64,000 nt of DNA, from the NCBI GenBank assembly GCA_950097015.1, contig CATNEN010000038.1, positions 27,962,001 to 28,026,000 on the forward strand, in the 5' to 3' direction. Below are positions 16,739-56,021 of this stretch, piece by piece. The DNA is from Macrostomum hystrix (lineage: Eukaryota; Animalia; Platyhelminthes). The first letter of the stretch is position 1; each line of letters opens with the position of its first letter. The position numbers and the translations under genes are program-made. The notes below the pieces were generated by a model. The model searched no databases. It had not been told where the DNA came from and worked only from the letters and a program-made list of their open reading frames with translations.

Positions 16739-18076
16739 TCAGTGCTCCAGCAGCGAACTCGCTACAAGGTCCTGCATCGTCTGGACGCAGTTCCACAGGT
16801 GGCTGACAAACTCCGGATCGCTGATGGTCTCGGGATCGACATGGCAGTCCAGTCCGGCAGTGACTCGATGCTCCGCCCTCGGCTCGGCGACAATCACATT
16901 GCCGTCCAGTTTGTCACTGCTGAAGAACTTGAATTTGCGCAGCTTGACTTTGAACGGCCATTCGCCGTGCTGCTGCACAAAGCTGTGGTTCTTTTGCTCT
17001 CTCACGTACTCCAGGTTTCGAGCAAGGTGCGGCTGTCTCAGCCGATAGCGCTGTTCCGTGGTTTCCCACTCGTCTGTGAGATCAGCTCCTGGCTGGACTA
17101 TCTCGAACAGGTTCTGAAGCTCCTCCAGTTGGAATCCTTCCTTGACCAGGCACTCGTACACCTTTTCAGTCGAGTTGCTCGCGAATGAGGTGTCAAACTG
17201 CAGACGGAAGTCGGCCTTCTCACGAAACGTCCCTTTAAAATCCGAGCCCTTCGCTGTGACGAGGTCCAAGTTCCACTTATCCGTGATCATTGTGATGCTT
17301 TGCAGTTTGAGATCAGTTGCACCAAAGAACAGTTCAAACTTGTGCGTTTTGCCATTGAGACTCATTGAGATACAATGCTCAACATATTCCACAGCCTCAA
17401 AGCCTCGCATTTCGAGGAAGGCCTCTATTTTTTCATGACTGCCGCAATTCTTCTCAGTCATAAAGCTCGAATACATGAACATGTGGTTCGGGTTTTCTCT
17501 TATGGTAAAGAACCTCTGGAGAAGTCTTCGACCATCTCGGTAGGTGCTTCGATCAAGCAGCAGATTGAAGTCATCAAGTCGAGGTCCTGGTCTCTCATCG
17601 AACTTGAAGTACTTTTCAAACAATTTCAGGTCGCCGATTCGAAAGTGAACCATGAGACGGCACCTGTCATTGTGCAGCATCTCACAATTTTTAACATCTC
17701 TGACAATGCTCTGTAGCTTCTCACGAAATCGACGACAAACTTCTTCGTCGGTTGTCGGGTCAAACAGCGGGACACGGATATAACCTCGCCGAGTGAAATC
17801 ATGCAAGGTTTCAGGATCGTTATACCAAAAGCCCCTGTACTCTCCGAATGCGAGGGGCTGCTCAGCGCTTCCACAGAGAAGAATCCGAATTTCGCAGTCT
17901 CGATTCTGATATCTGAATCTCCTATCTGAATTGTTCCCAGGAGCGCATTCAGCTCTATTTCGTGGTCCATAGCGCGGAATGACAATTCGTGGTCCATAGC
18001 GCGGAATGACAATTCGTGGTTCAGCTCCTTGACGACCCGCTGCAGCTCCTTTGTTGACGCCTCCACCAGCTGACAT
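16739..18076 (-). CDS. Unknown protein family, subfamily A copy 1 (Gly/Arg-rich N-terminus + putative CYTH/TTM-like domain)
   Basis: 445-codon intronless, non-repetitive ORF from the first ATG (18076); alignable with four other ORFs in the window. Fold assignment is inference. Confidence 0.85.
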   Translation of the reverse strand: MSAGGGVNKGAAAGRQGAEPRIVIPRYGPRIVIPRYGPRNRAECAPGNNSDRRFRYQNRDCEIRILLCGSAEQPLAFGEYRGFWYNDPETLHDFTRRGYIRVPLFDPTTDEEVCRRFREKLQSIVRDVKNCEMLHNDRCRLMVHFRIGDLKLFEKYFKFDERPGPRLDDFNLLLDRSTYRDGRRLLQRFFTIRENPNHMFMYSSFMTEKNCGSHEKIEAFLEMRGFEAVEYVEHCISMSLNGKTHKFELFFGATDLKLQSITMITDKWNLDLVTAKGSDFKGTFREKADFRLQFDTSFASNSTEKVYECLVKEGFQLEELQNLFEIVQPGADLTDEWETTEQRYRLRQPHLARNLEYVREQKNHSFVQQHGEWPFKVKLRKFKFFSSDKLDGNVIVAEPRAEHRVTAGLDCHVDPETISDPEFVSHLWNCVQTMQDLVASSLLEH

Positions 18077-19580
18077 TGTGTCCAAGTGTGCAATGTGTTT
18101 GTTTAGGAATTTTCAGTTTGGGTTCTGATCAGTCGATTGCAAGTGCGAGCTATGGCAAGCTATCTGTCGCGGCTTTTAAATCTTTTCCGATATTGTAGGA
18201 AGGTTTCGAAATTTCTTGGAAATTCGTTCGGTTCGTGCACTTAAACACATTGGTAGTGATCTAATATTCATGTTGTTTTTTAAGTTCCAGACATATGGGA
18301 GTGTCGGGTTTATGCAAACCTCAATAAACAATGTACACTGCATACTGTACATTCTGCCCTATGCTTTCCTCTGGCCTAGCTCGCACTTGATTCTAAAAAT
18401 AGCTCGCACTCATGTCTCCCTCCATTTGTGCGCGACCCCACTCCCCTTCTAGAACATTCTGTAAGCCTTGCAAATACGCTTCAGAACATTGTATTTGCCA
18501 TGGCTCACAATCACATGATTCGCGTATACGACGAGGCGTCCGTGGATCGATACGGCCCAGGAATGTGAGGAAGAAGTTCGGCGAGCGTTCGCTGGGGAGC
18601 GTGTGCGTGTGGGACAAAGAAACAGCTGCCCCTGTGTTAGCAATCTCCCCATCTAACGGCCGCGGGCTAGCCGACACTTCCACTAGTCAAAAAATACTCG
18701 GCTAGCCGGGTGGACCCATGTGGACCCACGGGCGGCTAGCCTTACTGGCGGTGGACTTGGGGAATTCCGATAAATAATACATGAATCATGCTGCTCGTCT
18801 ACTGCAAGTAAAAAGTATAAAATATGAAGTATGTAACCCACGTGCATGTAGTAAGATAACTATATAAATAATTTATTTCCAAACATATAGGAAAGCAAAC
18901 CACAGTTCATACCAATTTATACTGTAATACAATACAACTTAAGCTGAATTAGTTCAGATGGGACTTACTGATTAAGTGCATTTTACATGTAAATAGATAA
19001 TATGACGCTTTTTCTATCGTGCTAAGTAAGAACCAATAAGTGATCACCCCGTCTCAAACAACTGATTATTTCCACATTAACAGTGAGGGCTTAATGGTTT
19101 GTCGGAAGCCAGAATTACAATTGCAACACATCTAATGTAAAACAAAATGGCTATAAAACTAAATAATTTGTGAACATTGAGTGTCACAATGAAATATCGG
19201 ATCAAAAGAAATTAAATATTAAAACCCTAGGAACAAAAAGGATTCGAACTCTCAAAACTCCTAGCAAATGACAAACTCTCTAACAACACGCCACACATTT
19301 ACCCATAAAAGAGCAGGAAAAGACAAATTTATACAGGCTAAAATACTAAAATCAAAATCAAATCATATCTATGGTACTTTTATTTTACGCCATATTACTT
19401 GGTTGCAGGATTAAATTGGCTAGCTGTTTAACAGCAGCTGAATTAAAAAATTAAATTAAAGCCGTTTTAGCCAGCTCTCCAACCCTAAAAATAGGCTTTT
19501 CATTCTACCCATTCTCCCCCACTTACTTCTACCCCTTCACTTCCTTCTTCCCCTCCACTTACTTCTACCTTCTACCTTCT

Positions 19581-21103: not shown

Positions 21104-21116
21104 TATTCAACTCAGC

Positions 21117-23286: not shown

Positions 23287-24417
23287 ATGTCAGCTGGTGG
23301 AGGCGTCAACAAAGGAGCTGCAGCGGGTCGTCAAGGAGCTGAACCACGAATTGTCATTCCGCGCTATGGACCACGAATTGTCATTCCGCGCTATGGACCA
23401 CGAAATAGAGCTGAATGCGCTCCTGGGAACAATTCAGATAGGAGATTCAGATATCAGAATCGAGACTGCGAAATTCGGATTCTTCTCTGTGGAAGCGCTG
23501 AGCAGCCCCTCGCATTCGGAGAGTACAGGGGCTTTTGGTATAACGATCCTGAAACCTTGCATGATTTCACTCGGCGAGGTTATATCCGTGTCCCGCTGTT
23601 TGACCCGACAACCGACGAAGAAGTTTGTCGTCGATTTCGTGAGAAGCTACAGAGCATTGTCAGAGATGTTAAAAATTGTGAGATGCTGCACAATGACAGG
23701 TGCCGTCTCATGGTTCACTTTCGAATCGGCGACCTGAAATTGTTTGAAAAGTACTTCAAGTTCGATGAGAGACCAGGACCTCGACTTGATGACTTCAATC
23801 TGCTGCTTGATCGAAGCACCTACCGAGATGGTCGAAGACTTCTCCAGAGGTTCTTTACCATAAGAGAAAACCCGAACCACATGTTCATGTATTCGAGCTT
23901 TATGACTGAGAAGAATTGCGGCAGTCATGAAAAAATAGAGGCCTTCCTCGAAATGCGAGGCTTTGAGGCTGTGGAATATGTTGAGCATTGTATCTCAATG
24001 AGTCTCAATGGCAAAACGCACAAGTTTGAACTGTTCTTTGGTGCAACTGATCTCAAACTGCAAAGCATCACAATGATCACGGATAAGTGGAACTTGGACC
24101 TCGTCACAGCGAAGGGCTCGGATTTTAAAGGGACGTTTCGTGAGAAGGCCGACTTCCGTCTGCAGTTTGACACCTCATTCGCGAGCAACTCGACTGAAAA
24201 GGTGTACGAGTGCCTGGTCAAGGAAGGATTCCAACTGGAGGAGCTTCAGAACCTGTTCGAGAGAGTCGAGCCGGGAGCTGATCTCACAGACGAGTGGGAA
24301 ACCACGGAACAGCGCTATCGGCTGAGACAGCCGCACCTTGCTCGAAACCTGGAGTACGTGAGAGAGCAAAAGAACCACAGCTTTGTGCAGCAGCACGGCG
24401 AATGGCCGTTCAATTAA
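23287..24417 (+). pseudogene. Unknown family subfamily A copy 2, 3'-truncated at a rearrangement junction
   Basis: Near-identical to copy 1 up to GEWPF, then runs into 20-bp satellite sequence and a TAA; lacks about 70 C-terminal residues. Confidence 0.8.
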
Positions 24418-25154
24418 TCAATCAGGAATCCAGTTAATCAGGAATCTATTTAATCTGACGTAATAATTTTCAATGAATCGAGAAGCTTCAATCGGTCTTA
24501 CGGAATAGAAAACTATATAGTTGTTTCTTGTTTTTGCTAATGTTATTAAATAGACTTTTGCATAGATATGGCCTGTGACAATGACCTATTTATTTTGAAC
24601 AATCCTCTTTTTCATTTGCGAGCAAGTATTCGACTATTACTGACTGTAGTCAGTATTGCAAATGGGTCATAATGAAAAGAATTATCCGATGCTTTTAATG
24701 CTATTGCACATTCTCGTGAATGAAAGCAACAAAGTCAGACAAGCCATCTGCAGTTCTTAGACAAATAAACCACATACACTTGTATTTAAAATCAACAAAC
24801 CAACAAAGAAGTTTCTATTCTCGAATAAGGAAATCCTAGGAAAGATCTGACGTTCAGATAGTACGTGTCAGAAAAATAAAAAAGAATAAAAATTCAATTC
24901 AATAATAACAAACATCCGAATTTGCCCTTGTCGTTATATTTCCGGATTTACCTCGTGTAGTGCACTGTGTTGCCCTCTCCCTCCCACGCTGGCATAGCGT
25001 CACGGTCAACGTGCACTGCTCTTGGCATGTAGGTGTTACGTAATGTGCTCATGACTGGGCTGCACGTCGGCAGCCACTATGTGGCTGCGACTATATAACA
25101 ACTCAAATATACGGCCCAAGAGGCCACGTTCCTTACTAACTCAACGGCACTACA

Positions 25155-26660
25155 ATGGCGTCGCAAGTCAGTATTCAAACCCCACCCGCACTGGACTTGC
25201 GCACGGACCCAAGCACAGCCCAAACAAAATGGAAGAAATGGCTCGCCCAGTTCCAGCTGTTCATGGTCGCCGCAGGCATCGACGATAAGAAGCGGCTGCG
25301 CCAGCTGCTACTGTACACCGCCGGCGAGGACCTGCAGGCGATCGCGGCCGGCCTCACCAACGAGGCGGTGGGCAAGGACGTCGACACACTCGTGGCCGCG
25401 CTCAATCAGCACTTCGACGGCAAGCGGAATCTGCCGTTCACCCGCTACCAGTTCAGGCTCTGCACCCAGCGCCCCGGTGAGCCCATAGATGACTGGCTCC
25501 AGCGCCTCAAGGACGCCGCCGACTGCTGCGCCTTCGGAGACCTGCGAGAGTCCCTGATCCGTGATCAGGTGATTGCATGCTGCAGCTCCGACCATCTCCG
25601 TCGAAAGCTGCTAGCCATCGACAACGTGGACCTGGAGCAGGCGGTGCGGGCGGCCCGGGCCATGGAAGCGGCGGAGGCCCAAGCGAGCGTTATGGAGGCC
25701 AACGATGCGTCTGTGCAGCGGCTCCGACGTCAGGAGGCCGGGGCAGCAGCCCCTGCAGCGCGGCGGCCGACAGGGCAGCCGCGAGACAAGCAGCCGAACG
25801 GCGGGCAGACCAGGTGCATCAGGTGCGGAGCCCCCGGCCACCGCACGTGCAGCGCAGCCGAAGGCAAGACGTGCAACCGCTGCGGCAAGCGAAATCACCT
25901 GGCGAGGGCCTGCCTGTCCCGGCCGAAGGAAGACGTCCACGTCCTGAAGGCCGAGAGCGACAGCTCAGCGGCGGAGGACGGCGTGTTCTGCCTGACCGTG
26001 GCAGCCACAGGAACCGCGGCAGCCGGAGCCCAGACGTCGGTGTTCGTCGGTTCAACGCAGCTGCCCGTGCTGGTGGACAGCGGCGCTGACTGCAACATCA
26101 TCACCGAGCAGGCCTGGCGGACACTGCCGGGACCCCCGCAGCTGCAGGCAACTCGCACGAAGATCTTCGCCTTCCGCTCGCCGAAGCCGCTCAGCACTCT
26201 GGGAGCCTGCAGCCTGCGGGTGTCAACGGGGCAGAACAGTAGGACGGTTCGCTTCATCGTCGTCCCCGGCGGCGGCACCAACATCCTGGGACGTGAGGCC
26301 TCGACTTCGCTCGGGCTCCTGAGCCTAGGGCCTCAGGTCCATGCGATCGAGGCAACCGAGATGGAGGACCCCGCGATCCAGGCGGTCGTCAGGCAATTTC
26401 CCGAGCTCTTCAGAGGCCTCGGAAAGGTCAAGGACGTCTCTGCGCAGATCAACATCAAATCCGACGCCAGGCCAATCTGCCACCCGTCCTCCCGCGTTCC
26501 GGTGCACCTCCGGGAGGCGCTGGACCGCGAGCTAGACGAGCAAGAGCAGCTGGGCATCATCCAGCCAGTCGAGGGCCCCACGCCGTGGGTCAGCCGCATC
26601 GTCGTGGTGCCGAAGGAGGACGCAAGAGCGTGCGGATCACGCAGGATCTGCGCGACGTGA
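25155..26660 (+). CDS. gag: Gypsy gag-protease-RT start
   Basis: CNRCGKRNHLARAC zinc knuckle; LVDSGAD aspartic protease motif. Confidence 0.9.
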   Translation: MASQVSIQTPPALDLRTDPSTAQTKWKKWLAQFQLFMVAAGIDDKKRLRQLLLYTAGEDLQAIAAGLTNEAVGKDVDTLVAALNQHFDGKRNLPFTRYQFRLCTQRPGEPIDDWLQRLKDAADCCAFGDLRESLIRDQVIACCSSDHLRRKLLAIDNVDLEQAVRAARAMEAAEAQASVMEANDASVQRLRRQEAGAAAPAARRPTGQPRDKQPNGGQTRCIRCGAPGHRTCSAAEGKTCNRCGKRNHLARACLSRPKEDVHVLKAESDSSAAEDGVFCLTVAATGTAAAGAQTSVFVGSTQLPVLVDSGADCNIITEQAWRTLPGPPQLQATRTKIFAFRSPKPLSTLGACSLRVSTGQNSRTVRFIVVPGGGTNILGREASTSLGLLSLGPQVHAIEATEMEDPAIQAVVRQFPELFRGLGKVKDVSAQINIKSDARPICHPSSRVPVHLREALDRELDEQEQLGIIQPVEGPTPWVSRIVVVPKEDARACGSRRICAT

Positions 26661-28270
26661 ACAAGGCGGCGCTGAGGGAGCGACACCAGATCCCGACATT
26701 CGAGGAGGCGACAAGCGACATGGCTGGCTCATCGATCTTCAGCAAGCTCGACATTTTCAAAGCATTCCACCAGATTGAAATCAGCGAGGACAGCCGGAAG
26801 TACTTCGTGTTCTCAACGCCCCGAGGAATGAGGCAGTTGACTCGCCTGAGCATGGGATTCGCCTCCGCGTCGGAGATCCTACAGCGTGTGATGCAGCGAG
26901 TGCTGGAGGGCCTGACGGGTGTTAAGTGGATCCACGACGACATCATCGTCCACAGCCGAGACCTGAAGGCTCACAAGACTCACGTGGCAGCCTGCCTGGC
27001 CAGACTGCGAGAGCACGGCATCACCCTCAACGGCAGCAAGTGCCGCTGGGGGATCGGCAAGGCCAAGTTCATGGCAATGACGCTGTCCAAGTTTGGGATC
27101 CAGCCATCTCAAGAGAAGATCGCCGAGCTGCAAGCCTTCAAAGAACCACAGTCCGTCAAGGAGGTCCGGTCGTTCCTCGGCCTGGCCAACCACCTGGAGA
27201 AGTTCATGCCGCAGCTAGCGGACAAGGCGGAGCCGCTCAGGCGGCTGACACGGAAGGGCCAGGAGTTCGTCTGGGACAGCGAGCAGCAGCAGGCCTTCCA
27301 GAACGTCAAGGACTGCATCTCAGAGAGCGGCACCCTGGCCTTCTTCGACAAGCAGCTGCCAACAGAGCTAGTGGTCGATGCATCGCCCGTTGGCGTCGGC
27401 GCCATCCTGCAGCAGCGGCACCCCGGTGGGCAGACCCGGCCGGTGGCCTACGCGAGCCGCACCCTCAGCGAGGTCGAGCGGAGCTACAGCCAGATCGAGC
27501 GCGAGGCCCTGGGCGTCAAGTTCGGCTGCCTAAAGTTCGCGTTCTACCTGGAGGGCTGTCCTCATTTCGACGTCTACACCGACCACAAGCCGCTGCTGGG
27601 CATTTACAGGCCAGACTCCCGGCCGCCGCCGCGACTCGAGCGCATCATGCTACAGACGCAGCACTTCTCATTCACGCTGCACTACCGCAAGGGCGAGGAC
27701 AATCCGGCCGATCCCCTGAGCCGCAACCCGCTGCCGGAGACGTCGCCGGGCAGGGACGAGGCCGCGGAGACCAGGCTGCTCAACGCCGTGGTCCGGGCCG
27801 CGACACCGAAGGGCCTGACGATGGACAGGATTCGCGCTGCAACCAAGAGGGACCCCGCTCTGACGGTCGTCATGCAAGCCCTAGCGACTGGGCACTGGCG
27901 CTGCGGCGCCGCGGCCCCGGCGCACAGCTTCCGGTCCCTGAAGGATGAGCTCAGCGTCCACGACGACGTCTTGCTCCGGGGCAGCAAGATCGTGATCCCG
28001 ACGGAGCTGCAGCAGCTGACCATCGCACTGGCGCACCAGGGTCACCTCGGCCAGAAGAAAACGTGCGACCGGCTGCAGCGGAAGGTCTGGTGGCCCGGCA
28101 TGACACAGCAGGTCGAGGCCGTTGTCTCCCACTGCCGCCCGTGCCAGGCGGCTCGACCGGACGGCGCCGTCAAGCAGCCGCCGATGCAGCCGACACCGCT
28201 GCCCTCGGGGCCGTGGCAATCGCTGAGCGTGGACGTCTGCGGACCGTTCCCGACTGGCGAGAACGTGGTG
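26620..28270 (+). pseudogene. pol: Gypsy pol (RT, RNase H, partial integrase), frameshifted relative to gag
   Basis: DLRDVNKA, FSKLDIFKAFHQI, WIHDDIIV, YSQIEREAL, AHQGH...CRPC, SVDVCGPF. Confidence 0.9.
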
Positions 28271-28509
28271 GTTCAGCCGGTACTTCAGCCGGTACCCGGA
28301 CACCTACGTGGTGCGCAGCCTCACGAGCACCAGCATCATCACCTGCGCTATGGCCATCAGGCGTCGTTGAGTTTGTTTCATCGAGTTCGAAGCACTATTT
28401 TATTGTAGTCAGTGAAAAAGTGTTAGTTTGTAAACTCTTTTTATGCAATAATGAATTTCACATGATTAAGGTTACTATTTGACTGGGCATCGCGATTACA
28501 AGCTTTGTC

Positions 28510-29376: not shown

Positions 29377-30771
29377 TCAGTGCTCCAGCAGCGAACTCGC
29401 TACAAGGTCCTGCATCGTCTGGACGCAGTTCCACAGGTGGCTGACAAACTCCGGATCGCTGATGGTCTCGGGATCGACATGGCAGTCCAGTCCAGCAGTG
29501 ACTCGATGCTCCGCCCTCGGCTCGGCGGCAATCACATTGCCGTCCAGTTTGTCACTGAAGAACTTGAATTTGCGCAGCTTGACTTTGAACGGCCATTCGC
29601 CGTGCTGCTGCACAAAGCTGTGGTTCTTTTGCTCTCTCACGTACTCCAGGTTTTGAGCAAGGTGCGGCTGTCTCAGCCGATAGCGCTGTTCCGTGGTTTC
29701 CCACTCGTCTGTGAGATCAGCTCCCGGCTGGACTATCTCGAACAGATTCTGAAGCTCCTCCAGTTGGAATCCTTCCTTGACCAGGCACTCGTACACCTTT
29801 TCAGTCGAGTTGCTCGCGAATGAGGTGTCAAACTGCAGACGGAAGTCGGCCTTCTCACGAAACGTCCCTTTAAAATCCGAGCCCTTCGCTGTGACGAGGT
29901 CCAAGTTCCACATATCCGTGATCATTGTGATGCTTTGCAGTTTGAGATCAGTTGCACCAAAGAACAGTTGGAACTTGTGTGTTTCGCCATTGAGACTCAT
30001 TGAGATACAATGCTCAACATATTCCACAGCCTCAAAGCCTCGCATTTCGAGGAAGGCCTCTATTTTTTCATGACTGCCGCAATTCTTCTCAGTCATAAAG
30101 CTCGAATACATGAACATGTGGTTCGGGTTTTCTCTTATGGTAAAGAACCTCTGGAGAAGTCTTCGACCATCTCGGTAGGTGCTTCGATCAAGCAGCAGAT
30201 TGAAGTCATCAAGTCGAGGTCCTGGTCTCTCATCGAACTTGAAGTACTTTTCAAACAATTTCAGGTCGCCGATTCGAAAGTGAACCATGAGACGGCACCT
30301 GTCATTGTGCAGAATCTCACAATTTTTAACATCTCTGACAATGCTCTGTAGCTTCTCACGAAATCGACGACAAACTTCTTCGTCGGTTGTCGGGTCAAAC
30401 AGCGGGACACGAGTGAAATCATGCAAGGTTTCAGGATCGTTATACCAAAAGCCCCTGTACTCTCCGAATGCGAGGGGCTGCTCAGCGCTTCCACAGAGAA
30501 GAATCCGAATTTCGCAGTCTCGATTCTGATATCTGAATCCTTTCCTGAGACTTAGGCTATTGTTACCAGGAGCGTATTCAGCTCTATTCCGTGGTCCATA
30601 GCGCGGAATGACAATCCGTGATTCAGCTCCTTGACGACCCGCTGCAGCTCCTTTGTTGACGCCTCCACCAGTATTTTGTGGTCCATAGCGCGGAATGACA
30701 ATTCGTGGTTCAGCTCCTTGACGACCCGCTGCAGCTCCTTTGTTGACGCCTCCACCAGCACCAGCTGACAT
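29377..30771 (-). CDS. Unknown family subfamily A copy 3
   Basis: Intact ORF from ATG 30771; differs from copy 1 by an N-terminal duplication, in-frame indels and a few substitutions. Confidence 0.85.
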   Translation of the reverse strand: MSAGAGGGVNKGAAAGRQGAEPRIVIPRYGPQNTGGGVNKGAAAGRQGAESRIVIPRYGPRNRAEYAPGNNSLSLRKGFRYQNRDCEIRILLCGSAEQPLAFGEYRGFWYNDPETLHDFTRVPLFDPTTDEEVCRRFREKLQSIVRDVKNCEILHNDRCRLMVHFRIGDLKLFEKYFKFDERPGPRLDDFNLLLDRSTYRDGRRLLQRFFTIRENPNHMFMYSSFMTEKNCGSHEKIEAFLEMRGFEAVEYVEHCISMSLNGETHKFQLFFGATDLKLQSITMITDMWNLDLVTAKGSDFKGTFREKADFRLQFDTSFASNSTEKVYECLVKEGFQLEELQNLFEIVQPGADLTDEWETTEQRYRLRQPHLAQNLEYVREQKNHSFVQQHGEWPFKVKLRKFKFFSDKLDGNVIAAEPRAEHRVTAGLDCHVDPETISDPEFVSHLWNCVQTMQDLVASSLLEH

Positions 30772-43378: not shown

Positions 43379-44683
43379 CTAATGTGCAACAGCGAGCTCA
43401 GCGTCCACCGAAGCGGCTACAAGATCCTGCAGCTGCCGGCAGCAGTCCCACATGTGGCTAACAAACTCCGGCTCGGTTAGAACCTCGCGATGCAACGGAC
43501 AGTCTAGATGGGCTGTGACTCGGAGCTCCACACCGGGCTGCGGAATGAGCTGTCCCTCAAGCGCATTGGTGAGCTTGTAAAATTTGATCTGCCTGAGAAG
43601 CACCAGGAAGGGCCATCGATTGTGACGTAGCACAAACGTTCTGTTCAGCTGCTCGCGGATGTACTCCAGCTTCTCGCCCAGGTGAGGATACCTGACACGG
43701 TAGGAGTGGTTCGGCGTTTCCCACAGCGCCGGAGCCCCGGCGGCAGAGGTTTCCAGGGGCGGCAATTCGCCGACCCTCTCAAACAGCTCCTGTAGCTCCG
43801 TCTCCAGAAAGCCTTCCTCGAGTAGGGTCTCGGCGACCTTGTCTGTTTCGTTGTTGACGAAAGAGGTGTCGAACTGCAGCCTGAAGTCGGCAACCTCGCG
43901 GAACGAGCCCTGGTAGTTGCTCCCTTTGGCAGTTACGATGTTCAGATTCCACTTGCTCTTATACAGCGTAATGGTCTTCATTTTCATATCCTCGAGGTTG
44001 TACATGAGCTCGAACTTTTTCAGCTGGCCGTTGAGCGAAGTGGTGAAAATCTGTCTCTCGTCACTACTGGCGACTTCTTCAAAGCCGCGCATGGCGAGAA
44101 AGTTCTCAATGGTGGCGTGATTCTCAATGGACTTCTCCGTCTCGAACGTCGACTTGATTCGCCTCACGTCTTCGTCATCGTTAAAGAATCTTTTTAGCAG
44201 CGCAGAACCCCGTTGAACGGTGCGATCTTCGAGCAATAAGCTGAAGTCTCCAAGGCGAGGTCCGGGCCGACTGTCGAAATGGAAGCTTCTGTGAACCAGG
44301 TACAGATCGCCTACCCTCATGTGCACCTTCAGGTGACAGGCTTCACTCCTCAGCTCCTCGCACTCAGCCACGGAAGCTGCGATCGACTGCATTTTTTCGC
44401 GAAATTTTTCGCAGATCTCTTCGTCAGTTGTGGCTTGAAACAGTGGCACCCTGATCCAGCCATTGTTAAACGATTCTCTAGCATAGTCGTTCAGGAAGCC
44501 CTTGTACTGTGAGAACACAAGCTGCGAACCATCAGAGCCGCACAGTAGGGTCCAAAAATTCCACGACTGGTCCCTGCCACCTCGACCGCGTCCTCTGCCA
44601 CCCCTGCCGCGTTCGCCTCCACGTCCTCTATTGTCTCCGCGTCCTCTGCCTCGCTCCCATCGGTTGTTAAAGTTGTTAGCCAT
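43379..44683 (-). CDS. Unknown family subfamily B copy 1 (RGG N-terminus + putative CYTH/TTM-like domain), 434 aa
   Basis: Intact intronless ORF; shares LLCGS, IRVPLF, VHxRxGDL, RPGPRL, MRGFE, VTAKGS, ADFRLQFDTSF, PEFVSH with subfamily A. Confidence 0.87.
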   Translation of the reverse strand: MANNFNNRWERGRGRGDNRGRGGERGRGGRGRGRGGRDQSWNFWTLLCGSDGSQLVFSQYKGFLNDYARESFNNGWIRVPLFQATTDEEICEKFREKMQSIAASVAECEELRSEACHLKVHMRVGDLYLVHRSFHFDSRPGPRLGDFSLLLEDRTVQRGSALLKRFFNDDEDVRRIKSTFETEKSIENHATIENFLAMRGFEEVASSDERQIFTTSLNGQLKKFELMYNLEDMKMKTITLYKSKWNLNIVTAKGSNYQGSFREVADFRLQFDTSFVNNETDKVAETLLEEGFLETELQELFERVGELPPLETSAAGAPALWETPNHSYRVRYPHLGEKLEYIREQLNRTFVLRHNRWPFLVLLRQIKFYKLTNALEGQLIPQPGVELRVTAHLDCPLHREVLTEPEFVSHMWDCCRQLQDLVAASVDAELAVAH

Positions 44684-46404: not shown

Positions 46405-46655
46405 ATATTCTATTCTATACTACTCTATTCTATTCTATTCTATTCTATTCTATTCTATTCTGTTCTATACTATACTATTCTATTCTATTCTATACTATTC
46501 TATTCTATTCTATTCTATTCTATTATATTCTATTCTATTCTATTCTATTCTCTTATACTCTATTCTATTATATTCTATTCTATTCTATTCTATTCTATTC
46601 TATTCTATTCTATTCTATACTACTCAATTATATTCTATTCTATTCTATTCTATTC
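46405..46655. repeat. (TATTC)n microsatellite
   Basis: Read directly. Confidence 0.96.
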
Positions 46656-46664
46656 CACTCTCAC

Positions 46665-46905
46665 CGCCGATCCGAGTTGTCCAGTCCGCAGTGCAGCACA
46701 GACGCCAGTGAAAAGTGCTGCCTGAAGAATTGTCTGCGCTGCTGATCAGTTAGTGTGATACCATCTGGTCCAATTCTGAGCTGGCAGTTGGACACAGCCG
46801 GGGTTGTCTGATTGGCTCCTAGCAGCGAGCTGACAGCTCGGGTGACTGCCTCACTGCCAGTGAGCGACTCGACACCGATTGTACCAAAGTAGGCAACCGG
46901 AAAAG
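46665..46905 (-). pseudogene. Orphan duplicate of the tensin PTB exon
   Basis: Near-identical to 59383-59623 with splice sites kept; neighbouring exons are absent from this copy. Confidence 0.85.
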
Positions 46906-47059
46906 CTGGCAAAGTGCAATTAGAGGAATATTCTTTCTTGATGAAAAAATATCCTTTTAAAAAGCTAAATATGTTTAGAAACCTTAACCAACGATTTGAG
47001 GAAATTGCATGTACAATTATAGAAAAATAAGCAATTCTAAGAAATATAAAATTTTCTTG

Positions 47060-48050: not shown

Positions 48051-48933
48051 TGATTCTCAGTGTTGTTCTAGATTGATTCTCAGTGTTGTTCTAGCTTGAT
48101 TCTTGGCGTGGTTCTAGCTTGATTCTCAGTGTTGTTCTAGCTTGACTCTCAGTATTGTTCTAGCTTGACTCTCAGTGTTGTTCTAGCTTGACTCTCAGTG
48201 TTTTTCTAGCTTGACTCTCAGTCTTGTTCTAGCTTGACTCTCAGTGTTGTTCTAGCTTGACTCTCAGTCTTGTTCTAGCTTGACTCTCAGTGTTGTTCTA
48301 GCTTGACTCTCAGTCTTGTTCTAGCTTGACTCTCAGTCTTGTTCTAGCTTGACTCTCAGTCTTGTTCTAGCTTGACTCTCAGTCTTGTTCTAGCTTGACT
48401 CTCAGTCTTGTTCTAGCTTGACTCTCAGTGTTGTTTTTGCTTGATTCTCGGTGCGGTTCAAGCTTGACTCTCAGTGTTGTTCTAGCTTGATTCTTGGTGT
48501 GGTTCTAGCTTGATTCTTGGCGTGGTTCTAGCTTGATTCTTGGCGTGGTTCTAGCTTGATTCTCAGTGTGGTTCTAGCTTGATTCTCGGTGTGGTTCTAG
48601 CTTGATTCTCGGTGTGGTTCTAGCTCGATTCTCGATGTGGTTCTAGCTTGATTCCTGACGTGGTTCTAGCTTGATTCTTGGCGTGGTTCTAACTTGATTT
48701 ACTGACGTGGTTCTAGCTTGATTCTTGGCGTGGTTCTAGCTTGATTCTCGGTGTGGTTCTAGCTTGATTCTCGGTGTGGTTCTAGCTTGATTCTCGGTGT
48801 GGTTCTAGCTTGATTCTCAGTGTGGTTCTAGCTTGCTTCTTGGCGTGGTTCTAGCTTGATTCTTGGCGTGGTTCTAGCTTGATTCTCGGTGTGGTTCTAG
48901 CTCGATTCTCGATGTGGTTCTAGCTTGATTCTC
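48051..48933. repeat. 23-bp minisatellite, second block (continues after the LINE at 53729-53812)
   Basis: Same unit as 40987-43012. Confidence 0.95.
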
Positions 48934-50287
48934 TCTCTCTCTCTCTCTCTCTCTCTACTGGCCCCTCGGCCAAAGGCCATACAGGGGGCGCGCCAGCGCG
49001 CCCGTTGCCTCCAGGAAATCCAGCACCCTCTCCGGGTGCTCCTGCAGCAGGGACATCGAGCCGATGCCTTCAGAGCAGCGGCGCTCCTCCTCCCATCTCG
49101 GGCAGTCCAGCAGGAAGTGTTCCGTGTTCTCGACAGGGGCTTGGCAATGTGGGCAGACCGGGCTCTCCACGCGGCCCCAGCGGTGTAGGGTGTCCCGAAG
49201 GAAAGGGGCCCGGTTGGCCCGCAGCTGATAAAGGGCCACTTCCTGGTCCCGCCGCCTCCTGTTGCTTGGCGGCAGTGGCCTGCCCCCGCAGCGCCGGTGA
49301 GGGTGCTCCGCCGGAACCTCAGCCTCGTACTGGGCTTTGGCCCGGACGACGCTCTGCCGCCGGACCGCAGCCTGAATGGCACCTGCTGAAGCCCGGGCGC
49401 CTTCCTGAGGCAGCGCGCAGCCTTCCCGGGCCAGCGAGTCGGCTTCCTCGTTCAGGTGCAGACCCGCATGTCCCGGGATCCAGATGACTGTGAGCCGGTG
49501 TTTTTCAGCCAGCTGGTGCAGCAGGGCCACTGCCTGTGCCGCCCCATGGTCGTCCTGACACCGCTCCGGGCGCTGCAGCTTCTCGAAGAGCGCGCGGGAG
49601 TCGAAGAGCAGCCAGATGGTACGATGGGTCTGCCCCTCCAGCAACTCCCACGCCGCCTGCAGCCCCGCCGCTGCCGCCGCCGCCTCTGCAGATGTTGAGC
49701 ACGTGAGGCGCCCTGTCGCGACTGACCCGTTGACATCCGGGCCCGGTGCCCGCCGCCGGATCACGTAGCCGCCTCCCCCGTTCCGGACTCCTTCCTCCGC
49801 TGCCCCGTCCGTCCAAATTTGCAGGTCAGGCGGGTCCTTCTGGTGCAGGTTGTCCAGAGTGATCAGGGCTTCCTGCCTCCGCCGCCACTCCGGGTCCTCC
49901 CTCTTCGTGTTGGGCGTGCAGACAAACGACACTGCCATACCCCTCCACGGCCTCGGCAGCATGGTCACAGGCACCCGCTCCTCGGGATTGTCGGCACTCC
50001 TCCTGCAGCCAAAACCCCTCAACACTTGCTTGGCGGTATCCCTCCAGCTGGGCCGCAAACCCCCGCCTCGCGCCTTCAGCCTGCGCGCCGTGCATGGCTC
50101 CTGGGCCAGGCCTCCGAGCGGATGGGCAGCCGGGAACTGCCGGCACCTGGTGAGCAGCGCAGCAGCCTTCTCCTCGCAGATGGGGCCCAGCGACAGCAGC
50201 TCCGCGTCCGTCGTCAGCGCTAGCGAACGCGCCCCTGCCCCGACCCCCGTGATGATGCGGGCCGCTTCGGCGTTCAGCCGTTCCAAC

Positions 50288-51169
50288 TGTTGTAGCCTTC
50301 GCGTTCTGTCGGCAGTTCGCCAACGCGGTAGTGGGGTTCGGGTACGGACCGCCCAAAGCTTGCCGGGAGTAGAGGGAGGGGAAGCAGCGACCCTCGAGGC
50401 GTCCAGGCACTCCGAGGAGAGACGGGATGGACTTGGAGCGTACCGACACTCGCTAAGCCCTGATTGAAGGTTTTGACTGCGAGCGGGCAGCCACTCGACA
50501 GCCCAAGAGAGAGGTAGATGATGGTCTGGAAGCGTACCGACACTTCTCAGACTCGAGGAAGACTCTGGATGAGAAGGATGATGGTGAGCTCTCGGCAACC
50601 GCAGAGGTCGGGCAGAGGAACAAGATTTGATAATAAATAAATAAATAACGCGTGAATACTTTTCTTACCGAGAGGGGTTGAATGTGGAACTCATGCAAAA
50701 TGGTGCTTCCGGCTGTGTATTATGGCTTCTACTTTCTACGTCCAATCGCTTCTGATTTTCAAATTAACTTCAGCAATGCTCTCGCACGAGTTCAGGTGGG
50801 GGCGGGCTGGCCACGGGCAGCGCGCGCAAATAAATAACCGCGCGGGGTGGGGCGAGGGCATAGGGCTGGGCGGGGTAGGGCTAAGCCACGCAGGGCTGGG
50901 GGTAGCAAACAGGGCTGGGCTGGGGTCGGCTGCAAGCCGAGAGAGAGAGAGAAGGGGACCGGCTAGCCAATCAGAAGCCTCCTTGGCGAGAGGCCTGATT
51001 GGACTAGCGAGGTCGGCACAGGGGACAGCCAATGGGCGAGCGAAAAACATGACAAAGGAGGGTGGCCTAAGCCGGGGCCGGCCAGAACTGGTTTGAGCAG
51101 GTGGCCGGGGTGGACGGGTTAGAGACGCAGGGGTCGGGGCAAGGTCATTGTGAGACGCAGCTCACAACA
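50288..51169. mobile_element. Solo LTR (882 bp) nested in the LINE, 4-bp TSD CAAC
   Basis: TGTTGT...ACAACA ends; CAAC at 50284-50287 and 51170-51173; removal restores THRQRLERLNAEAARIITG. Confidence 0.9.
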
Positions 51170-53648
51170 CAACCTCTGCCGGTGAGTTGGGGCCAGGAAG
51201 CTCCACCAGACCTCCGCGCAGTAGAGTCCAGCCGGCCTGACGTAGCTGCAATACAGCTGCCGCAGCGTACGAGCCTCCGCTCCCCAGGTGCGGCCTGCAA
51301 ACGCACGGAGAGCGATGAGCCTGCGGCGAATGGTGGCAGCCGCAGATTGGGCGTGCTCGGCGAAGGTCAGCTGGCTGTCAAGGTGCACGCCCAGGATCTT
51401 GACCGTGCTGCTGAGCGCGATCTGCTGGCCGCCGACTGTCAGCTGCACGGGGGCCTTGCCCTTGACCTCCCCCGGGTGCGTGGTAACCAGTAGGGCTTCG
51501 GTCTTGTCGGGCGCCAGCTCGAACTGATGATCCTTGCACCAGGAAGCCACTGCATCGATGGCGGTTTGCGACAGCTCCGCCGCCTCAGCTGCAGATTTCC
51601 CAGACGCGTTGACGGTCAGATCATCCGCATACTGCACTGGCCTGGACTCCGGCGCAGCGGCCTTAACGGCCGCCGGCAACGTGGAGGTAGCGATGACGAA
51701 GAGGAGGGGGGAGAGCGGACTGCCCTGCGGGACGCCTTCCTTGAGGACCCGGCACCGACTCTCAGCGCTCTCCCAGCGAACCGTGGCACGCCTGTCAGAC
51801 AGGAAGGCTCTAACCCACCTAAGCACTCTGGCCGGCGCGCGTGCCCGGGCCAACTCACGGAGGGTGCCTAACCGCCAGGTGCGGTCGAACGCTGCCTTGA
51901 AATCCACCGCCGTCACCATCGATCGGTGCATCGGCTGTTCCTGCAGGCTGTCGAACGCGGGCTGCGCAATCTGCGCAACGCAGTCAATGGTGCTGCGGCC
52001 TGTCCTGAACCCCGCCTGCTCGTCTGGGATCAGCCCGTGCAACTCGGCCCACACCGCCAGTCTCCGCTGCACCATGCTTTCCAGCAGCTTGCCGATGCAG
52101 CTCAGCAAGGAGATAGGCCGGTAGGACTTCGGGTCGTCCTTGTTCTTGCCCTTCTTCACAGCCAGCACAATGGTAGCCCGTCTCCAAGCACTCGGTAGCT
52201 TCGCTTCGACCCAGCTCCTGTTGAGCAGGGTGAGCAGCGCTACGAGCCCGCTGGACGGCAGCCGCTTCAGCAACTCGGGGTGGACCTCGTCACCGCCCGG
52301 GGCCTTGCCCTCACTCCGCCGGATGGCCTCCTGGAGCTCCGCAAGCTGGAATGGTGATGCCTCCGCGTCCTCAGGTCGCCGCCGCCATCTCCGCCTTTTC
52401 CTTGTCCGAGTGGGCCGTCCGCCCGTTGTGGACGAGCGGGCTGTCAGGGAGCGGGAGGCGAACGTTGCCGTCGAGCGCCCGGATGACCTGCCAGACCTTG
52501 GTGTCCGGCGTCCTCGCATCCAGCTTGGAAACGAAGGTCCTCCAGGCCTCCGCCTTAGCTGCCCTGAATGTGCGCTCCGCCTCGATCCTGGCAAGCCTGT
52601 ACGCTGCAACCTTCTCTGCGTTCCCGGGGTCGGATCTCAAGCGCTCCAGCGTCTCACGGAGGTTCGCGTGCGCCGCCCTGCACTCAGCGGACCACCAGGA
52701 CTTGGCCTTGGCGACCGAGCCCCTGGGTATGCTCTTGGCGGCTGACTCCAGAACCTTAGAGGTGAAGCTCCTGTTGGCCAGCTCCAGGGAGAAAAAACGC
52801 GAGGCGTCCCAGCCGGCAAAGCGGGAATCAACCTCGGCCTGAAACTTAGGCCAGTCCGCCCTCTTGATGTTCAGGTGCGTGCGGGCCCTTCTGCCCTGTG
52901 GCGCGACGTACTGCACCGTCAGCAGCAGTGGGAGATGGTCGGATCCGACGGGGTCCAGGACCTGCCAGATGGCCTTGCCGGCCCAGCTAGCATGGCCCAG
53001 GGCGACGTCCGGCGCAGTGCCTACTCCAGTCGCAGAGAACCGCGTCGGGGACCCGTCGTTGAGGGCTAGCCATCCTTGCCCAGCCAGCCAGTCATCCAGA
53101 TTCTCTCCCAGGTCGTCCGGGTCGCACTCAGGGTCCCAGCTGCCATGGGCGTTCACGTCCCCGAGAACCAGGTGGTCGGCTCCCCTCGGCCAGCTGCCGA
53201 GATGGAGGTCGCCGTCTCGCTGGTCCCCGTCGCCCAGGCGGACCGGCGGTCTGTAGATGTTGACGATGGTCAGCGGCTTGGTGTTGTTGCTCCGCACTCT
53301 GACACTCAGACTCTCCAAAGCAGCCCCGTCAGGCAGGCGCAGCCCGGGCTCCACTCTCTCATGCTGAATCCCGCGGCGAACAAGGGTCAGGAGACCCCCA
53401 TAGTGCCCTGGGTTGGCACCTCTGTGCACTTGACGCTCTCTTCTGTAGGCCGTGAAGTCCTTGAAGTCGGGGATGGGATCGTTGGGATGGAGATTCGTCT
53501 CTTGCAGCACGGCCACGTCTATCCTGTGCACATCGAGCAGCCGGCTCAACGCCGGTCCCCTCGATTTCAGGCCGTTGAGGTTGAGCTGCAGGATGTTAAG
53601 CGCTCTCTTCACTTGCTGCTGCTCCGGTCGTCTCTCGCCGCCTCTCGG

Positions 53649-53687
53649 TGGCCCTGGGTTCGACTCGATGTCCCCCGACAGCAGGAG
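53649..53687 (-). other. 2A-like StopGo peptide LLLSGDIESNPGP
   Basis: Hand translation, in frame with the APE domain; matches GD(V/I)ExNPGP. Confidence 0.9.
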
Positions 53688-54188
53688 CCGGCGGCGCGCC
53701 CAGTCGGGGTTGGACGTTGGTTAGTGAAAGCTTGATTCTCGATGTGGTTCTAGCTTGATTCTCTGTATGGTTCTAGCTTGATTCTCGGTGTTGTTCTAAG
53801 CTTGATTCTCGGTGTTATCTTTGAAATGTTAGGACTCGACAATGTAAAACTAATTTGTCGAGAACAATTAGTTTTTTAATGTTGATCAACGCAAAGGAAG
53901 GCTGGGCTGAATTGAAAGGTTTATTAGAATCTTTTTTTGCTTTTCTGCACAAAAACAGTAGCGTAGGCAATTGGGTCTGCTATCAAACGAAGGTAGACGA
54001 ACTATTTCAACTAAGTCAAATGGTTAGATACGAGCATTAATGTTAGTTAAAGTCAGGCTTAGTTTCTAAAAAAATAACTTTTTGGTTATTGTCCTACTGC
54101 CTTGTACTAACAAAGTAATAAGTTTTGTTCGCAAAGTGTTGATGAGTATTCTTCCCTCTCGAAACTGATGCGCTGATTTTGAAACCAG

Positions 54189-56021
54189 CTAATGTGCAAC
54201 AGCGAGCTCAGCGTCCACCGAAGCGGCTACAAGATCCTGCAGCTGCCGGCAGCAGTCCCACATGTGGCTAACAAACTCCGGCTCGGTTAGAACCTCGCGA
54301 TGCAACGGACAGTCTAGATGGGCTGTGACTCGGAGCTCCACACCGGGCTGCGGAATGAGCTGTCCCTCAAGCGCATTGGTGAGCTTGTAAAATTTGATCT
54401 GCCTGAGAAGCACCAGGAAGGGCCATCGATTGTGACGTAGCACAAACGTTCTGTTCAGCTGCTCGCGGATGTACTCCAGCTTCTCGCCCAGGTGAGGATA
54501 CCTGACACGGTAGGAGTGGTTCGGCGTTTCCCACAGCGCCGGAGCCCCGGCGGCAGAGGTTTCCAGGGGCGGCAATTCGCCGATCCTCTCAAACAGCTCC
54601 TGTAGCTCCGTCTCCAGAAAGCCTTCCTCGAGTAGGGTCTCGGCGACCTTGTCTGTTTCGTTGTTGACGAAAGAGGTGTCGAACTGCAGCCTGAAGTCGG
54701 CAACCTCGCGGAACGAGCCCTGGTAGTTGCTCCCTTTGGCAGTTACGATGTTCAGATTCCACTTGCTCTTATACAGCGTAATGGTCTTCATTTTCATATC
54801 CTCGAGGTTGTACATGAGCTCGAACTTTTTCTGCTGGCCGTTGAGCGAAGTGGTGAAAATCGGTCTCTCGTCACTACTGGCGACTTCTTCAAAGCCGCGC
54901 ATGGCGAGAAAGTTCTCAATGGTGGCGTGATTCTCAATGGACTTCTCCGTCTCGAACGTCGACTTGATTGGCTTGCGTTGCCGCTGCCTCACGACTTCGT
55001 CATCGTTAAAGAATCTTTTTAGCAGCGCAGAACCCTGTTGAACGGTGCGATCTTCGAGCAATAAGCTGAAGTCTCCAAGGCGAGGTCCGGGCCGACTGTC
55101 GAAATGGAAGCTTCTGTGAAACAGGTACAGATCGCCTACCCTCATGTGCACCTTCAGGTGACAGGCTTCACTCCTCAGCTCCTCGCACTCAGCCACGGAA
55201 GCTGCGATCGACTGCATTTTTTCGCGAAATTTTTTGCAGATCTCTTCGTCAGTTGTGGCTTGAAACAGTGGCACCCTGATCCAGCCATTGTTAAACGATT
55301 CTCTAGCATAGTCGTTCAGGAAGCCCTTGTACTGTGAGAACACAAGCTGCGAACCATCAGAGCCGCACAGTAGGGTCCAAAAATTCCACGACTGGTCCCT
55401 GCCACCTCGACCGCGTCCTCTGCCGCCCCTGCCGCGTTCGCCTCCACGTCGTCTATTGTCTCCGCGGCCTCTAAACTCGCTAGAGCCGAGAATTTCGTTA
55501 GCGTCGTTGTGTGGGTTGCTGCGGTCGTCATTAGGAAACTCGTTTTCGCCTCTCCAAGAGCCGCGTCCGCGTCCGCGTCCGCCACCACTACCGCCTCGAC
55601 TGAATCCTCTGCCGCGAATATTAGCGTCCCGTTGATACCAGCCGCCTCGTTCCGCCCTGAGCTCTGACGATGGAGGTCGATAGCTTCGCGGTTCATCATC
55701 CGTACCACTCTGCTGCCGCTGTGGCTGCCACTGTCGGGTCGAGTCTCTCGACGGAAGAAGCTGGGTCGATCTCTCGCCACTCTGCGCCGCGTCGTCATCT
55801 CGCCGTCTCTCGCGAACGTCTTGACCGCGCATCCAGGATTTGACAGATTCGGATTCAAATTGGCCTCTCTGTTGTCTGCCAGATCTTCTGCCTCTAGTCA
55901 CAGTGTGCCAATCGCCATTGGCACCACCTTGCCAGTTCTCCGGCTCGTTCCGATTCGATGACTGCGTTCGAGGCATCGCAGCGACGCCTCGCTCCCATCG
56001 GTTGTTTGGGCCGTTAGCCAT
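54189..56021 (-). CDS. Unknown family subfamily B copy 2, 610 aa with a long RG/RGG-rich disordered N-terminus
   Basis: Intact ORF; C-terminal part near-identical to 43379-44683. Confidence 0.88.
   Translation of the reverse strand: MANGPNNRWERGVAAMPRTQSSNRNEPENWQGGANGDWHTVTRGRRSGRQQRGQFESESVKSWMRGQDVRERRRDDDAAQSGERSTQLLPSRDSTRQWQPQRQQSGTDDEPRSYRPPSSELRAERGGWYQRDANIRGRGFSRGGSGGGRGRGRGSWRGENEFPNDDRSNPHNDANEILGSSEFRGRGDNRRRGGERGRGGRGRGRGGRDQSWNFWTLLCGSDGSQLVFSQYKGFLNDYARESFNNGWIRVPLFQATTDEEICKKFREKMQSIAASVAECEELRSEACHLKVHMRVGDLYLFHRSFHFDSRPGPRLGDFSLLLEDRTVQQGSALLKRFFNDDEVVRQRQRKPIKSTFETEKSIENHATIENFLAMRGFEEVASSDERPIFTTSLNGQQKKFELMYNLEDMKMKTITLYKSKWNLNIVTAKGSNYQGSFREVADFRLQFDTSFVNNETDKVAETLLEEGFLETELQELFERIGELPPLETSAAGAPALWETPNHSYRVRYPHLGEKLEYIREQLNRTFVLRHNRWPFLVLLRQIKFYKLTNALEGQLIPQPGVELRVTAHLDCPLHREVLTEPEFVSHMWDCCRQLQDLVAASVDAELAVAH

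Follow-up and report, generated by a model that had tools for sequence, protein, structure and literature searches.

What do the proteins of an intronless gene family do when their sequences resemble no named protein? A 64,000-nucleotide stretch of the Macrostomum hystrix genome (the window) raises this question, because an ORF listing with translations gives five paralogous intronless genes there, in two subfamilies, A and B. The initial annotation guessed at a triphosphate-tunnel (TTM) barrel that has lost its catalytic residues. We ask below whether these are genes of the animal at all, what fold they are predicted to have and what that fold might do.

Copies, flanks and transcription

Four of the five window copies are full length. 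A1 (54189..56021, minus strand) encodes 610 aa: an RG/RGG-rich disordered N-terminal tail of 216 aa (55374-56021, minus), and C-terminal to it a predicted TTM-like domain (54192-55373, minus). A2 (43379..44683, minus) encodes 434 aa, with a 45-aa RG tail and a domain 98% identical to that of A1. The two full-length B copies are B1 (16739..18076, minus; 445 aa from the ATG at 18076, in an ORF reaching 18085) and B3 (29377..30771, minus; 464 aa from the ATG at 30771, in an ORF reaching 30780, without an RGG tail). The exception is the incomplete B2 (23287..24417, plus; 376 aa from the ATG at 23287, in an ORF starting at 23278), which is an inverted duplicate of the B1 region 16950-19569 and 99.9% identical to it. 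At 24413 the homology gives way to LTR-like sequence, and B2 therefore lacks the last three barrel strands as well as the C-terminal helix. In pairwise alignment A1 and A2 are 97-98% identical, B1, B2 and B3 more than 95%, and A versus B about 49%; judged from these alignments, the likeness among the five copies is far above chance.

The initial annotation described a five-copy family in two diverged subfamilies with an Arg/Gly-rich disordered region fused to the domain. The five window ORFs and the two subfamilies stand, and all the conserved blocks it quoted are present: VH(F/M)R(I/V)GDL, S(S/T)FxT, FLxMRGFE, ADFRLQFDTSF, Y(V/I)REQxNx(S/T)F, WPFxVxLR, RVTAxL and EFVSHxW. Five is not the total, however. 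A search of the whole assembly (220 Mb, 42 contigs) finds a sixth, intact copy, A3, about 1 Mb away, and the six copies of the genome share a single contig, spread over about 1 Mb. The fusion with the disordered region holds for subfamily A and fails for B, whose copies have no RGG motifs: the tail is restricted to A1, A2 (where it is shorter), A3 (25 aa) and the M. lignano homologues. Much of the A1 tail is an in-frame 513-bp segment (55473..55985, minus; 171 aa) that is absent from A2. Public contigs contain forms with and without it. We considered whether the segment is a spliced intron and rejected this, since its ends on the gene strand (GT..TT) are not splice-like and the short form is the paralogue A2.

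Could the family be selfish DNA? A mobile-element gene, or an endogenised giant-virus gene captured recently and without host function, would fit genes that are intronless, richer in G+C than their own flanks, tandemly amplified, taxonomically restricted and embedded among satellites and retroelements. A1 also stands directly upstream of a LINE (endonuclease, reverse transcriptase, RNase H; 48934..53728, minus), on the same strand. We reject the idea that A1 is ORF1 of this LINE: the A2 flank (42928-43378, then a 23-bp repeat) is collinear with the A1 flank across the LINE, which separates the 3' flank of A1 from the 23-bp-unit tandem repeat found immediately after the 3' flank of A2. A Gypsy-type LTR retroelement fragment (gag-protease, reverse transcriptase-RNase H-integrase; 24413..28408, plus) lies between B2 and B3. 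Neither element is part of the family, and both are later, independent insertions. The other copies have no reverse transcriptase downstream, and no transposase, reverse transcriptase or terminal repeats travel with the copies. Because the A1 and A2 flanks are collinear save for the LINE, and because all six copies sit undispersed on one contig, the family is not a transposon. The copies are local segmental duplicates of two old subfamilies and are not themselves transposon ORFs.

Selection argues against a gene without function as well. The dN/dS of A versus B is 0.12-0.18, and homologues are kept in M. lignano; the family is under long-term purifying selection. Between A1/A2 and A3 the ratio is about 1.1, which may mean that some copies are decaying.

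A1 and A2 are probably transcribed, for which the initial annotation had asked for evidence. Contigs from four public runs, whose types were guessed by the tool, cover only about 53906-56139, a transcript-sized part of A1, at a depth of 160-180 in two of the runs, and neither the neighbouring LINE nor the flank upstream of A1 has any contig coverage. A loose 5' end looked like a candidate trans-spliced leader, and we rejected it, as the sequence is that of the genomic 5' UTR with 3 mismatches.

The predicted fold and its relatives

By sequence, the family is related only to unnamed proteins of Macrostomum; those of M. lignano are 46-55% identical. Pfam gives no match at E<=1, and none at E<=10 for seven family members. 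Searches of PDB sequences with phmmer and profiles return nothing. A2 and B1, searched by word index against 5.8 billion proteins, match nothing outside Macrostomum, and a profile HMM search of 1.84 billion representative proteins likewise gives no match beyond the genus. The PF02940 HMM has no match in the whole genome, and we found no literature on the M. lignano gene IDs of the homologues. An ESM feature search with A2 points to PF02940 (mRNA_triPase) clusters with a score of 0.87, which we treat as a lead only; it was not reproduced by an ESM Atlas search with B1. By these searches the family is confined to the genus Macrostomum. The initial annotation did not recognise a named family, and our searches match these proteins confidently neither to any other family nor to a transposon ORF.

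Two AlphaFold2 models were examined, model 1 for the A2 domain and model 2 for the B1 domain (the conserved domain is about 390 aa). Their confidence is low (mean pLDDT 50 and 52, pTM about 0.5), and they were built from 5-7 sequences, with alignment information common to both. Each has about 10 strands and a 30-residue terminal helix and shows, at a mean pLDDT of 50-52, the antiparallel tunnel barrel with C-terminal helix of the TTM fold. Foldseek against the PDB places RESC1/RESC2 first for model 1 (E 5e-8 to 1e-6), followed by Pct1, Cet1, T. cruzi Cet1, Vtc4, YgiF, Med18/20 and CYTH. VIA gives the same model a Z of 14.4 with 8cdp_B (251 residues, 4.7 A), then 11.8 with Pct1, 11.5 with Cet1, 11.0 with TcCet1 and 10.5 with the mimivirus enzyme. 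Among its top 46 rows, 44 are TTM-superfamily folds, Med18/20 included, and the remaining two are vaccinia RNA polymerase pre-initiation complex entries; the list below them includes an uncharacterised Geobacillus protein. For model 2 the Foldseek matches are again all TTM, and a Foldseek-independent search puts RESC1 (Z 10.1), Cet1 (9.5) and Pct1 (9.0) at the top of its long alignments. In BFVD, capping triphosphatases of giant viruses take all of the top 12 places and 17 of the first 21; the four remaining proteins either lack a name or are uncharacterised. From these matches we predict for the domain a TTM beta-barrel of the Cet1/RESC type, with a long C-terminal helix closing it. The earlier guess is supported in that both models retrieve almost solely TTM/CYTH-fold proteins. 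The initial annotation had also named three outcomes that would speak against it, a fold that is not a tunnel, a match to another family or a transposon ORF, and no transcription. We found none of them.

Low pLDDT leaves room for the fold call to be a modelling artefact, and outside this family RNA triphosphatases of the tunnel type are typically those of viruses, fungi and protozoa, which would suit an endogenised viral gene. However, two different query sequences lead to the same fold family, and the similarity to viral triphosphatases (best E 6e-5) is weaker than that to RESC (5e-8). Taken with the genomic evidence above, we think it very unlikely that the family is selfish or newly captured DNA or that its fold is an artefact.

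RESC1 and RESC2 (GAP2 and GAP1) belong to the kinetoplastid RNA editing substrate-binding complex (PDB 8CDP, 8FN6). They are an obligate heterodimer of paralogous inactive barrels with a swapped hairpin, and 5'-ppp RNA lies in one tunnel. Like the Macrostomum proteins as predicted here, they form a Cet1-like barrel of comparable size (about 350-400 aa, helices inserted), have lost metal-binding glutamates and are not shown to be TTM by their sequences; they too are a diverged paralogue pair, as A and B are. In contrast to this animal family, they are mitochondrial, kinetoplastid-specific and without an RGG tail, and a PDB profile search detects no sequence homology between the two. That a TTM barrel degenerated independently here is no less likely than shared ancestry with RESC.

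The Cet1/Pct1/Cth1-type enzymes (PF02940; mimivirus, PBCV, vaccinia) share with the predicted structure an N-terminal helix, a beta1 strand at the place of ExExK with a Gly after it, a long C-terminal helix and alternating basic strand residues, and match model 1 with VIA Z 10.5-11.8 over about 190-205 residues. Such barrels have been described from fungi, protozoa and large DNA viruses, and to our knowledge the only TTM-like folds generally known in animals are ThTPase and Med18/20. Animals cap their mRNA with a triphosphatase of the cysteine-phosphatase kind instead, and the usual guanylyltransferase gene is present in this genome. The CYTH proteins (ThTPase, YgiF, class IV adenylate cyclase, plant TTM1-3) and Vtc2/3/4 have the same superfamily fold (VIA Z 6-8.8) and score below the Cet1/RESC branch. 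Their barrels are smaller (about 160-200 aa), lack the inserted helices and have ExExK in active members. Vtc2/3 are further catalytically silent TTM paralogues.

Residues of the predicted tunnel

Whether the barrel could be active depends on its motifs, which we read across five lineages in domain numbering. We set beta1 and the last strand in register with Cet1 by strand position and polar/apolar alternation, not by superposition. Strand beta1 (77-85) reads C-H-L-K-V-H-M-R-V-G, with a polar face of [H/R/Q/K]78, [K/M/R]80, [H/F]82, R84 and G86. In neither possible register does any of the five lineages have Asp or Glu in place of the ExExK glutamates: Cet1 motif A becomes [K/M/R]-x-[H/F]-x-R, followed by x-G, and there is no PF02940 HMM match. 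The initial annotation had already proposed that these glutamates are replaced. We know of no characterised active TTM/CYTH enzyme that has lost them. The last strand reads V-E347-L-R349-V-T/S351-A-x-L-D. Motif C (ExExE) is not found on it, in the inferred register against Cet1 E492/E494/E496; the family has E-x-R-x-T/S and a single invariant Glu, E347. Any single mutation of Cet1 E305, E307 or E496 inactivates that enzyme, and RESC1/2, which are without two of these three metal-binding glutamates, are inactive (PMC10201420).

An active TTM enzyme with a rearranged site (a triphosphatase, polyphosphatase, nucleotide cyclase or RNA 5'-end processing enzyme), taking its metal through acidic residues of other strands, is rather unlikely in our opinion. 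It deserves attention since the fold matches include many enzymes of varied chemistry and the strong conservation of polar strand residues suggests a specific ligand site. Seventeen acidic residues are invariant. Those conserved away from beta1 (D87, E144, E186, D227, E305 and E347 of the family) could form a non-canonical metal site; E144, E186, D227, E305 and E347 are on or beside predicted strands. However, every lineage has K/M/R and H/F at the beta1 glutamate positions, and the nearest structural neighbours, RESC1/2, are inactive.

About fifteen Arg/Lys are invariant, many at alternating strand positions. They include R84, K184, K214, R229, R304, R325, K328 and R349, whose orientation we infer from the periodicity of their alternation along the predicted strands. 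In Cet1 the residues R393, K409, K456 and R458 line the tunnel and hold the gamma-phosphate. The absence of the metal-binding residues together with invariant basic strand residues makes non-catalytic phosphate binding most likely.

The barrel might instead be a pure scaffold or protein-interaction module with no ligand in its tunnel, and the RGG tail alone would contact RNA. Med18/Med20 set the precedent, being TTM-related open barrels without catalysis that appear among the structural matches, and loss of the catalytic motif and conservation of the B copies without any RGG tail agree with such a role. But the similarity to Med18/Med20 is lower (Z 6-8), and these Mediator head subunits, whose genes are universal and single-copy, have neither a charged tunnel nor an RGG tail. 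The ligand-binding tunnels of RESC, Cet1 and Pct1 clearly outscore the Mediator subunits (Z 11-14), and the alternating invariant residues R229-Q231-D233, R304-Q306-N308 and E347-R349 resemble a hydrophilic tunnel lining. We regard the scaffold as quite improbable.

Proposed function

The explanation we prefer, with a confidence only slightly better than even, is that this locally amplified Macrostomum family encodes a predicted inactive TTM barrel that binds a tri- or polyphosphate ligand non-catalytically. On beta1 the barrel would lack both of the glutamates by which active TTM enzymes hold their catalytic metal, on the last strand it would keep one, and its tunnel would bind the phosphate-bearing ligand with no catalysis. 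Both the lack of catalysis and the identity of the ligand are read from conserved residues and predicted structure. The RESC2 tunnel binds the gRNA 5'-triphosphate (PMC10201420), and by analogy the ligand here may be an RNA 5'-triphosphate end. Where an RGG tail is present, in the A-type and M. lignano proteins and with varying length, it would strengthen RNA binding independently of sequence.

A bolder proposal is an animal counterpart of RESC2, evolved or captured, in which a dead Cet1-type tunnel reads the RNA 5'-triphosphate, possibly as an A/B heterodimer and with the RGG tail serving association with condensates or RNA. We consider this unlikely. If the proposal is true, the protein might tag or protect RdRP products before their processing, or viral RNAs; the former are suggested because the genome encodes eukaryotic-type RdRPs. 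Since RNAi and transgenesis work in M. lignano, the idea is directly testable within the genus.

It is important to realize that this family is invisible to every sequence method and yet is placed by structure prediction from five to seven sequences. If it does read 5'-triphosphates, Macrostomum would recognise 5'-ppp through a module related neither to RIG-I nor to PIR-1, and this would be the second time, after kinetoplastid RESC1/2, that a capping-enzyme fold was independently turned into a probable 5'-triphosphate reader.

Gene copies and the elements around them

ORF listing and translation confirm the five related intronless ORFs of the initial annotation where it had placed them: in subfamily A, A1 (54189-56021, minus strand, 610 aa) and A2 (43379-44683, minus, 434 aa), and in subfamily B, B1 (16739-18076, minus), B2 (23287-24417, plus) and B3 (29377-30771, minus). 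All the conserved motif blocks it quoted are found in the protein alignment, which has 118 invariant positions over five lineages. Identity is 97-98% between A1 and A2, above 95% among the B copies and about 49% between A and B. The count of five holds for ORFs in the window, but B2 is not intact and the genome holds a sixth copy. B2 is an inverted duplicate of B1 (99.9% identical) whose homology stops at 24413 against an LTR-like sequence, so this damaged copy lacks the last third of the conserved domain. The sixth copy, A3, has an intact 396-aa ORF about 1 Mb from the others (L003:1516-2706, G000:C38:28987553-28988749). Six-frame searches with a protein query and a family profile found exactly six copies, all on one contig, among 220,453,370 bases in 42 contigs; the published M. 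hystrix assembly (PMC10468722) has 42 contigs totalling about 220 Mb.

A tandem segmental duplication of ~6.5 kb carries A1 and A2, and one of its copies has a LINE insertion. In the window self-comparison, the A2 3' flank (42928-43378) matches that of A1 (53729-54188), and the upstream flanks match as well (44648-46088 with 55986-57448; 46406-47379 with 59119-60095). A tandem repeat with a 23-bp unit adjoins the A2 flank (40987-43015) and recurs at 48049-48933. The collinear flanks and the recurring repeat identify 48934-53728 as a LINE inserted into one duplicate. This LINE, directly downstream of A1 on the same (minus) strand, encodes an endonuclease (52371-53612), a reverse transcriptase (51119-52609) and RNase H with zf-RVT (48955-50598), and no ORF1 was seen for it. 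We reject the idea that A1 is its ORF1 because the A1/A2 flanks are collinear on both sides of the LINE. Its ORFs lie in three overlapping or shifted frames with 57-63% G+C, and it sits ~200 bp or less from the apparent 3' end of the A1 transcript.

The B copies are also segmental duplicates. Between B2 and B3 lies a Gypsy-type fragment (24413-28408, plus) with gag (PNMA-like, zinc knuckle), protease, then reverse transcriptase, RNase H and an integrase zinc finger, ending before the integrase core. Because an LTR-like piece by the B1 flank (15570-16121) is 87% identical to LTR-like sequence at this fragment, the comparison suggests that the Gypsy insertion is older than the B1/B3 duplication. 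The window also holds many long satellite-like tandem arrays (1-1900, 3410-4761, 8926-10107, 13670-15618, 37197-38184, 40987-43015, 45344-46100, 47063-48933, 56676-57571, 61566-62599). They stand on both sides of every A copy, and several contain long ORFs that are spurious (3296-4780 and 8917-10221 among them). There is also an inverted duplication (1502-4590 against 12020-8927; 3.1 kb, 95% identity) enclosing ~4.3 kb, and three short ORFs lie in 36298-40697 between the B and A clusters.

Tail, transcription and selection

The proposed fusion of an Arg/Gly-rich disordered region to the domain holds for the A copies and the Macrostomum lignano proteins, but not for subfamily B. The RG/RGG-rich N-terminal tail measures 216 aa in A1, 45 in A2, 25 in A3 and about 240-265 in M. 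lignano; the B tails (65-90 aa) are Gly/Pro-rich and without RGG. A1 and A2 differ by an in-frame 513-bp tail block (55473-55985). In the tail-coding region of A1 (55274-55990), contigs from further runs and organism labels carry joints at which 52 and 591 bases are passed over and replacement letters stand in their place, so RG-tract length differs not only among paralogues but also among strains or closely related species. Given this variation and the B copies without RGG, the tail is an evolutionarily labile accessory and does not define the family.

Coverage was taken from Logan contigs of four public runs, which belong to two studies and bear three organism labels. In the A1 region it is confined to ~53906-56139, the ORF plus ~280 nt 3' and ~120 nt 5'. 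Two of the runs, both small with ~45 Mb of contigs apiece, reach a depth of 160-180. In the same runs the adjacent multi-copy LINE and the A1 upstream flank have no contig coverage. Contigs of both A1 and A2 type occur, the latter with a joint that skips 513 bp, along with further tail-length variants. No introns were seen in the coding region in Logan contigs on A1. A spliced leader at the 5' loose end is rejected, as the sequence there is a genomic UTR variant. The pattern is what RNA would give, and A1 and A2 are probably transcribed, only probably because the run type is a tool guess.

The suggested A-versus-B comparison of dN/dS (Nei-Gojobori, domain only) gives 0.12-0.18 with dS saturated, which indicates long-term constraint. 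B1 against B3 gives 0.31 on few changes. A1/A2 against A3 gives 1.05-1.18 at dS 0.06 (57 non-synonymous and 14 synonymous differences). These changes fall on both branches, nearly all at positions already variable; only F55I and T143A alter invariant sites, and all indels are in frame. The ratio points either to diversifying selection or to a relaxation of constraint on copies that are young and redundant.

Predicted fold and sequence relatives

We believe the domain probably has a triphosphate tunnel (TTM) fold, as first proposed, since AlphaFold2 models of A2 and B1 retrieve almost only TTM proteins. The A2 model, built from five sequences and of low confidence (pLDDT 50, pTM 0.50), shows some ten long strands and closes with a C-terminal helix of 30 residues. 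Foldseek against the PDB ranks the trypanosome RNA-editing proteins RESC1/RESC2 at the top (E 5e-8 to 1e-6), followed by Pct1, Cet1, T. cruzi Cet1, Vtc4, YgiF, Med18/20 and archaeal CYTH proteins. VIA-align gives Z 14.4 for the RESC chain 8cdp_B (251 residues, 4.7 A), 11.8 for Pct1 and 11.5 for Cet1 (about 200 residues each), 11.0 for TcCet1 (173), 10.5 for the mimivirus match (190) and 8.5 for YgiF (157). TTM-superfamily folds, Med18/20 included, make up 44 of its best 46 rows; the remaining two rows come from the vaccinia RNA polymerase pre-initiation complex, and an uncharacterised protein of Geobacillus follows at rank 47.

The B1 model, also of low confidence (pLDDT 52), has none but TTM proteins as its Foldseek matches. 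When it was compared with 48,161 chains independently of Foldseek, the long alignments that scored best were to RESC1 (Z 10.1), Cet1 (9.5), Pct1 (9.0) and YgiF (8.8). Against viral models, giant-virus capping triphosphatases are the first 12 matches and 17 of the first 21 (the other four being unnamed or uncharacterised), but these are weaker (best E 6e-5) than the RESC matches. A protein-language-model search with A2 reached clusters of PF02940, the Cet1-like RNA triphosphatases, below the score threshold; with B1 it returned nothing. On the models we take the nearest branch to be Cet1/RESC, not CYTH.

Sequence relatives in all searches are limited to three unnamed M. lignano proteins (PAA77625.1, PAA72380.1, PAA62700.1; 46-55% identity) and one unnamed Logan-derived protein. 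The profile HMM, run against 1.84 billion representative proteins, found nothing further. Pfam and PDB sequence searches with family members gave no match.

Putative active site and ligand

TTM enzymes carry ExExK at beta1. In the VIA-align alignments of the A2 model, the strand at this position is domain residues 77-85, where CYTH chains start aligning. Its apolar face is L79, V81, M83 and V85, and its polar face [H/R/Q/K]78, [K/M/R]80, [H/F]82 and R84, followed by invariant G86-D87. With equivalence taken from strand position, neither register has a glutamate at the ExExK-equivalent place. The last strand, V-E347-L-R349-V-T/S351-A, keeps one. The invariant basic residues (R84, K184, K214, R229, R304, R325, K328, R349) belong to stretches in which polar positions alternate, for example D227-R229-Q231-D233 and Y302-R304-Q306-N308.

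Cet1 requires E305, E307 and E496, and each single mutation inactivates it; RESC1/2 are inactive and lack two of these three, yet in RESC2 the Lys/Arg residues of the tunnel still bind the 5'-triphosphate of the gRNA (Dolce et al., PMC10201420). Among the structure matches it is these inactive barrels that the family domain most resembles. The catalytic motifs by which Cet1-like enzymes are recognised are not found in it, and we therefore advise against classing it as an RNA triphosphatase. Because the beta1 glutamates are missing and the last strand has one, it is reasonable to infer that canonical catalysis has probably been lost, in agreement with the pseudo-enzyme originally proposed. A capping role is unlikely, since the M. 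hystrix genome encodes an ordinary capping guanylyltransferase and gave no match to PF02940.

Binding of a phosphate ligand by the modelled domain is plausible, and RNA 5'-ppp is suggested as that ligand purely by analogy. The genome has eukaryotic-type RdRP (PF05183) genes at about three loci (G000 C32:34568-36371, C25:2819819-2820334, C7:2556477-2561124), which make endogenous 5'-triphosphate RNAs conceivable, though the link is circumstantial. As a working mechanism, the domain would bind tri- or polyphosphate, such as an RNA 5'-end, non-catalytically. The family is best described, on its predicted structure, as a new, Macrostomum-restricted, sequence-orphan TTM branch resembling the inactive RESC1/2 barrels.
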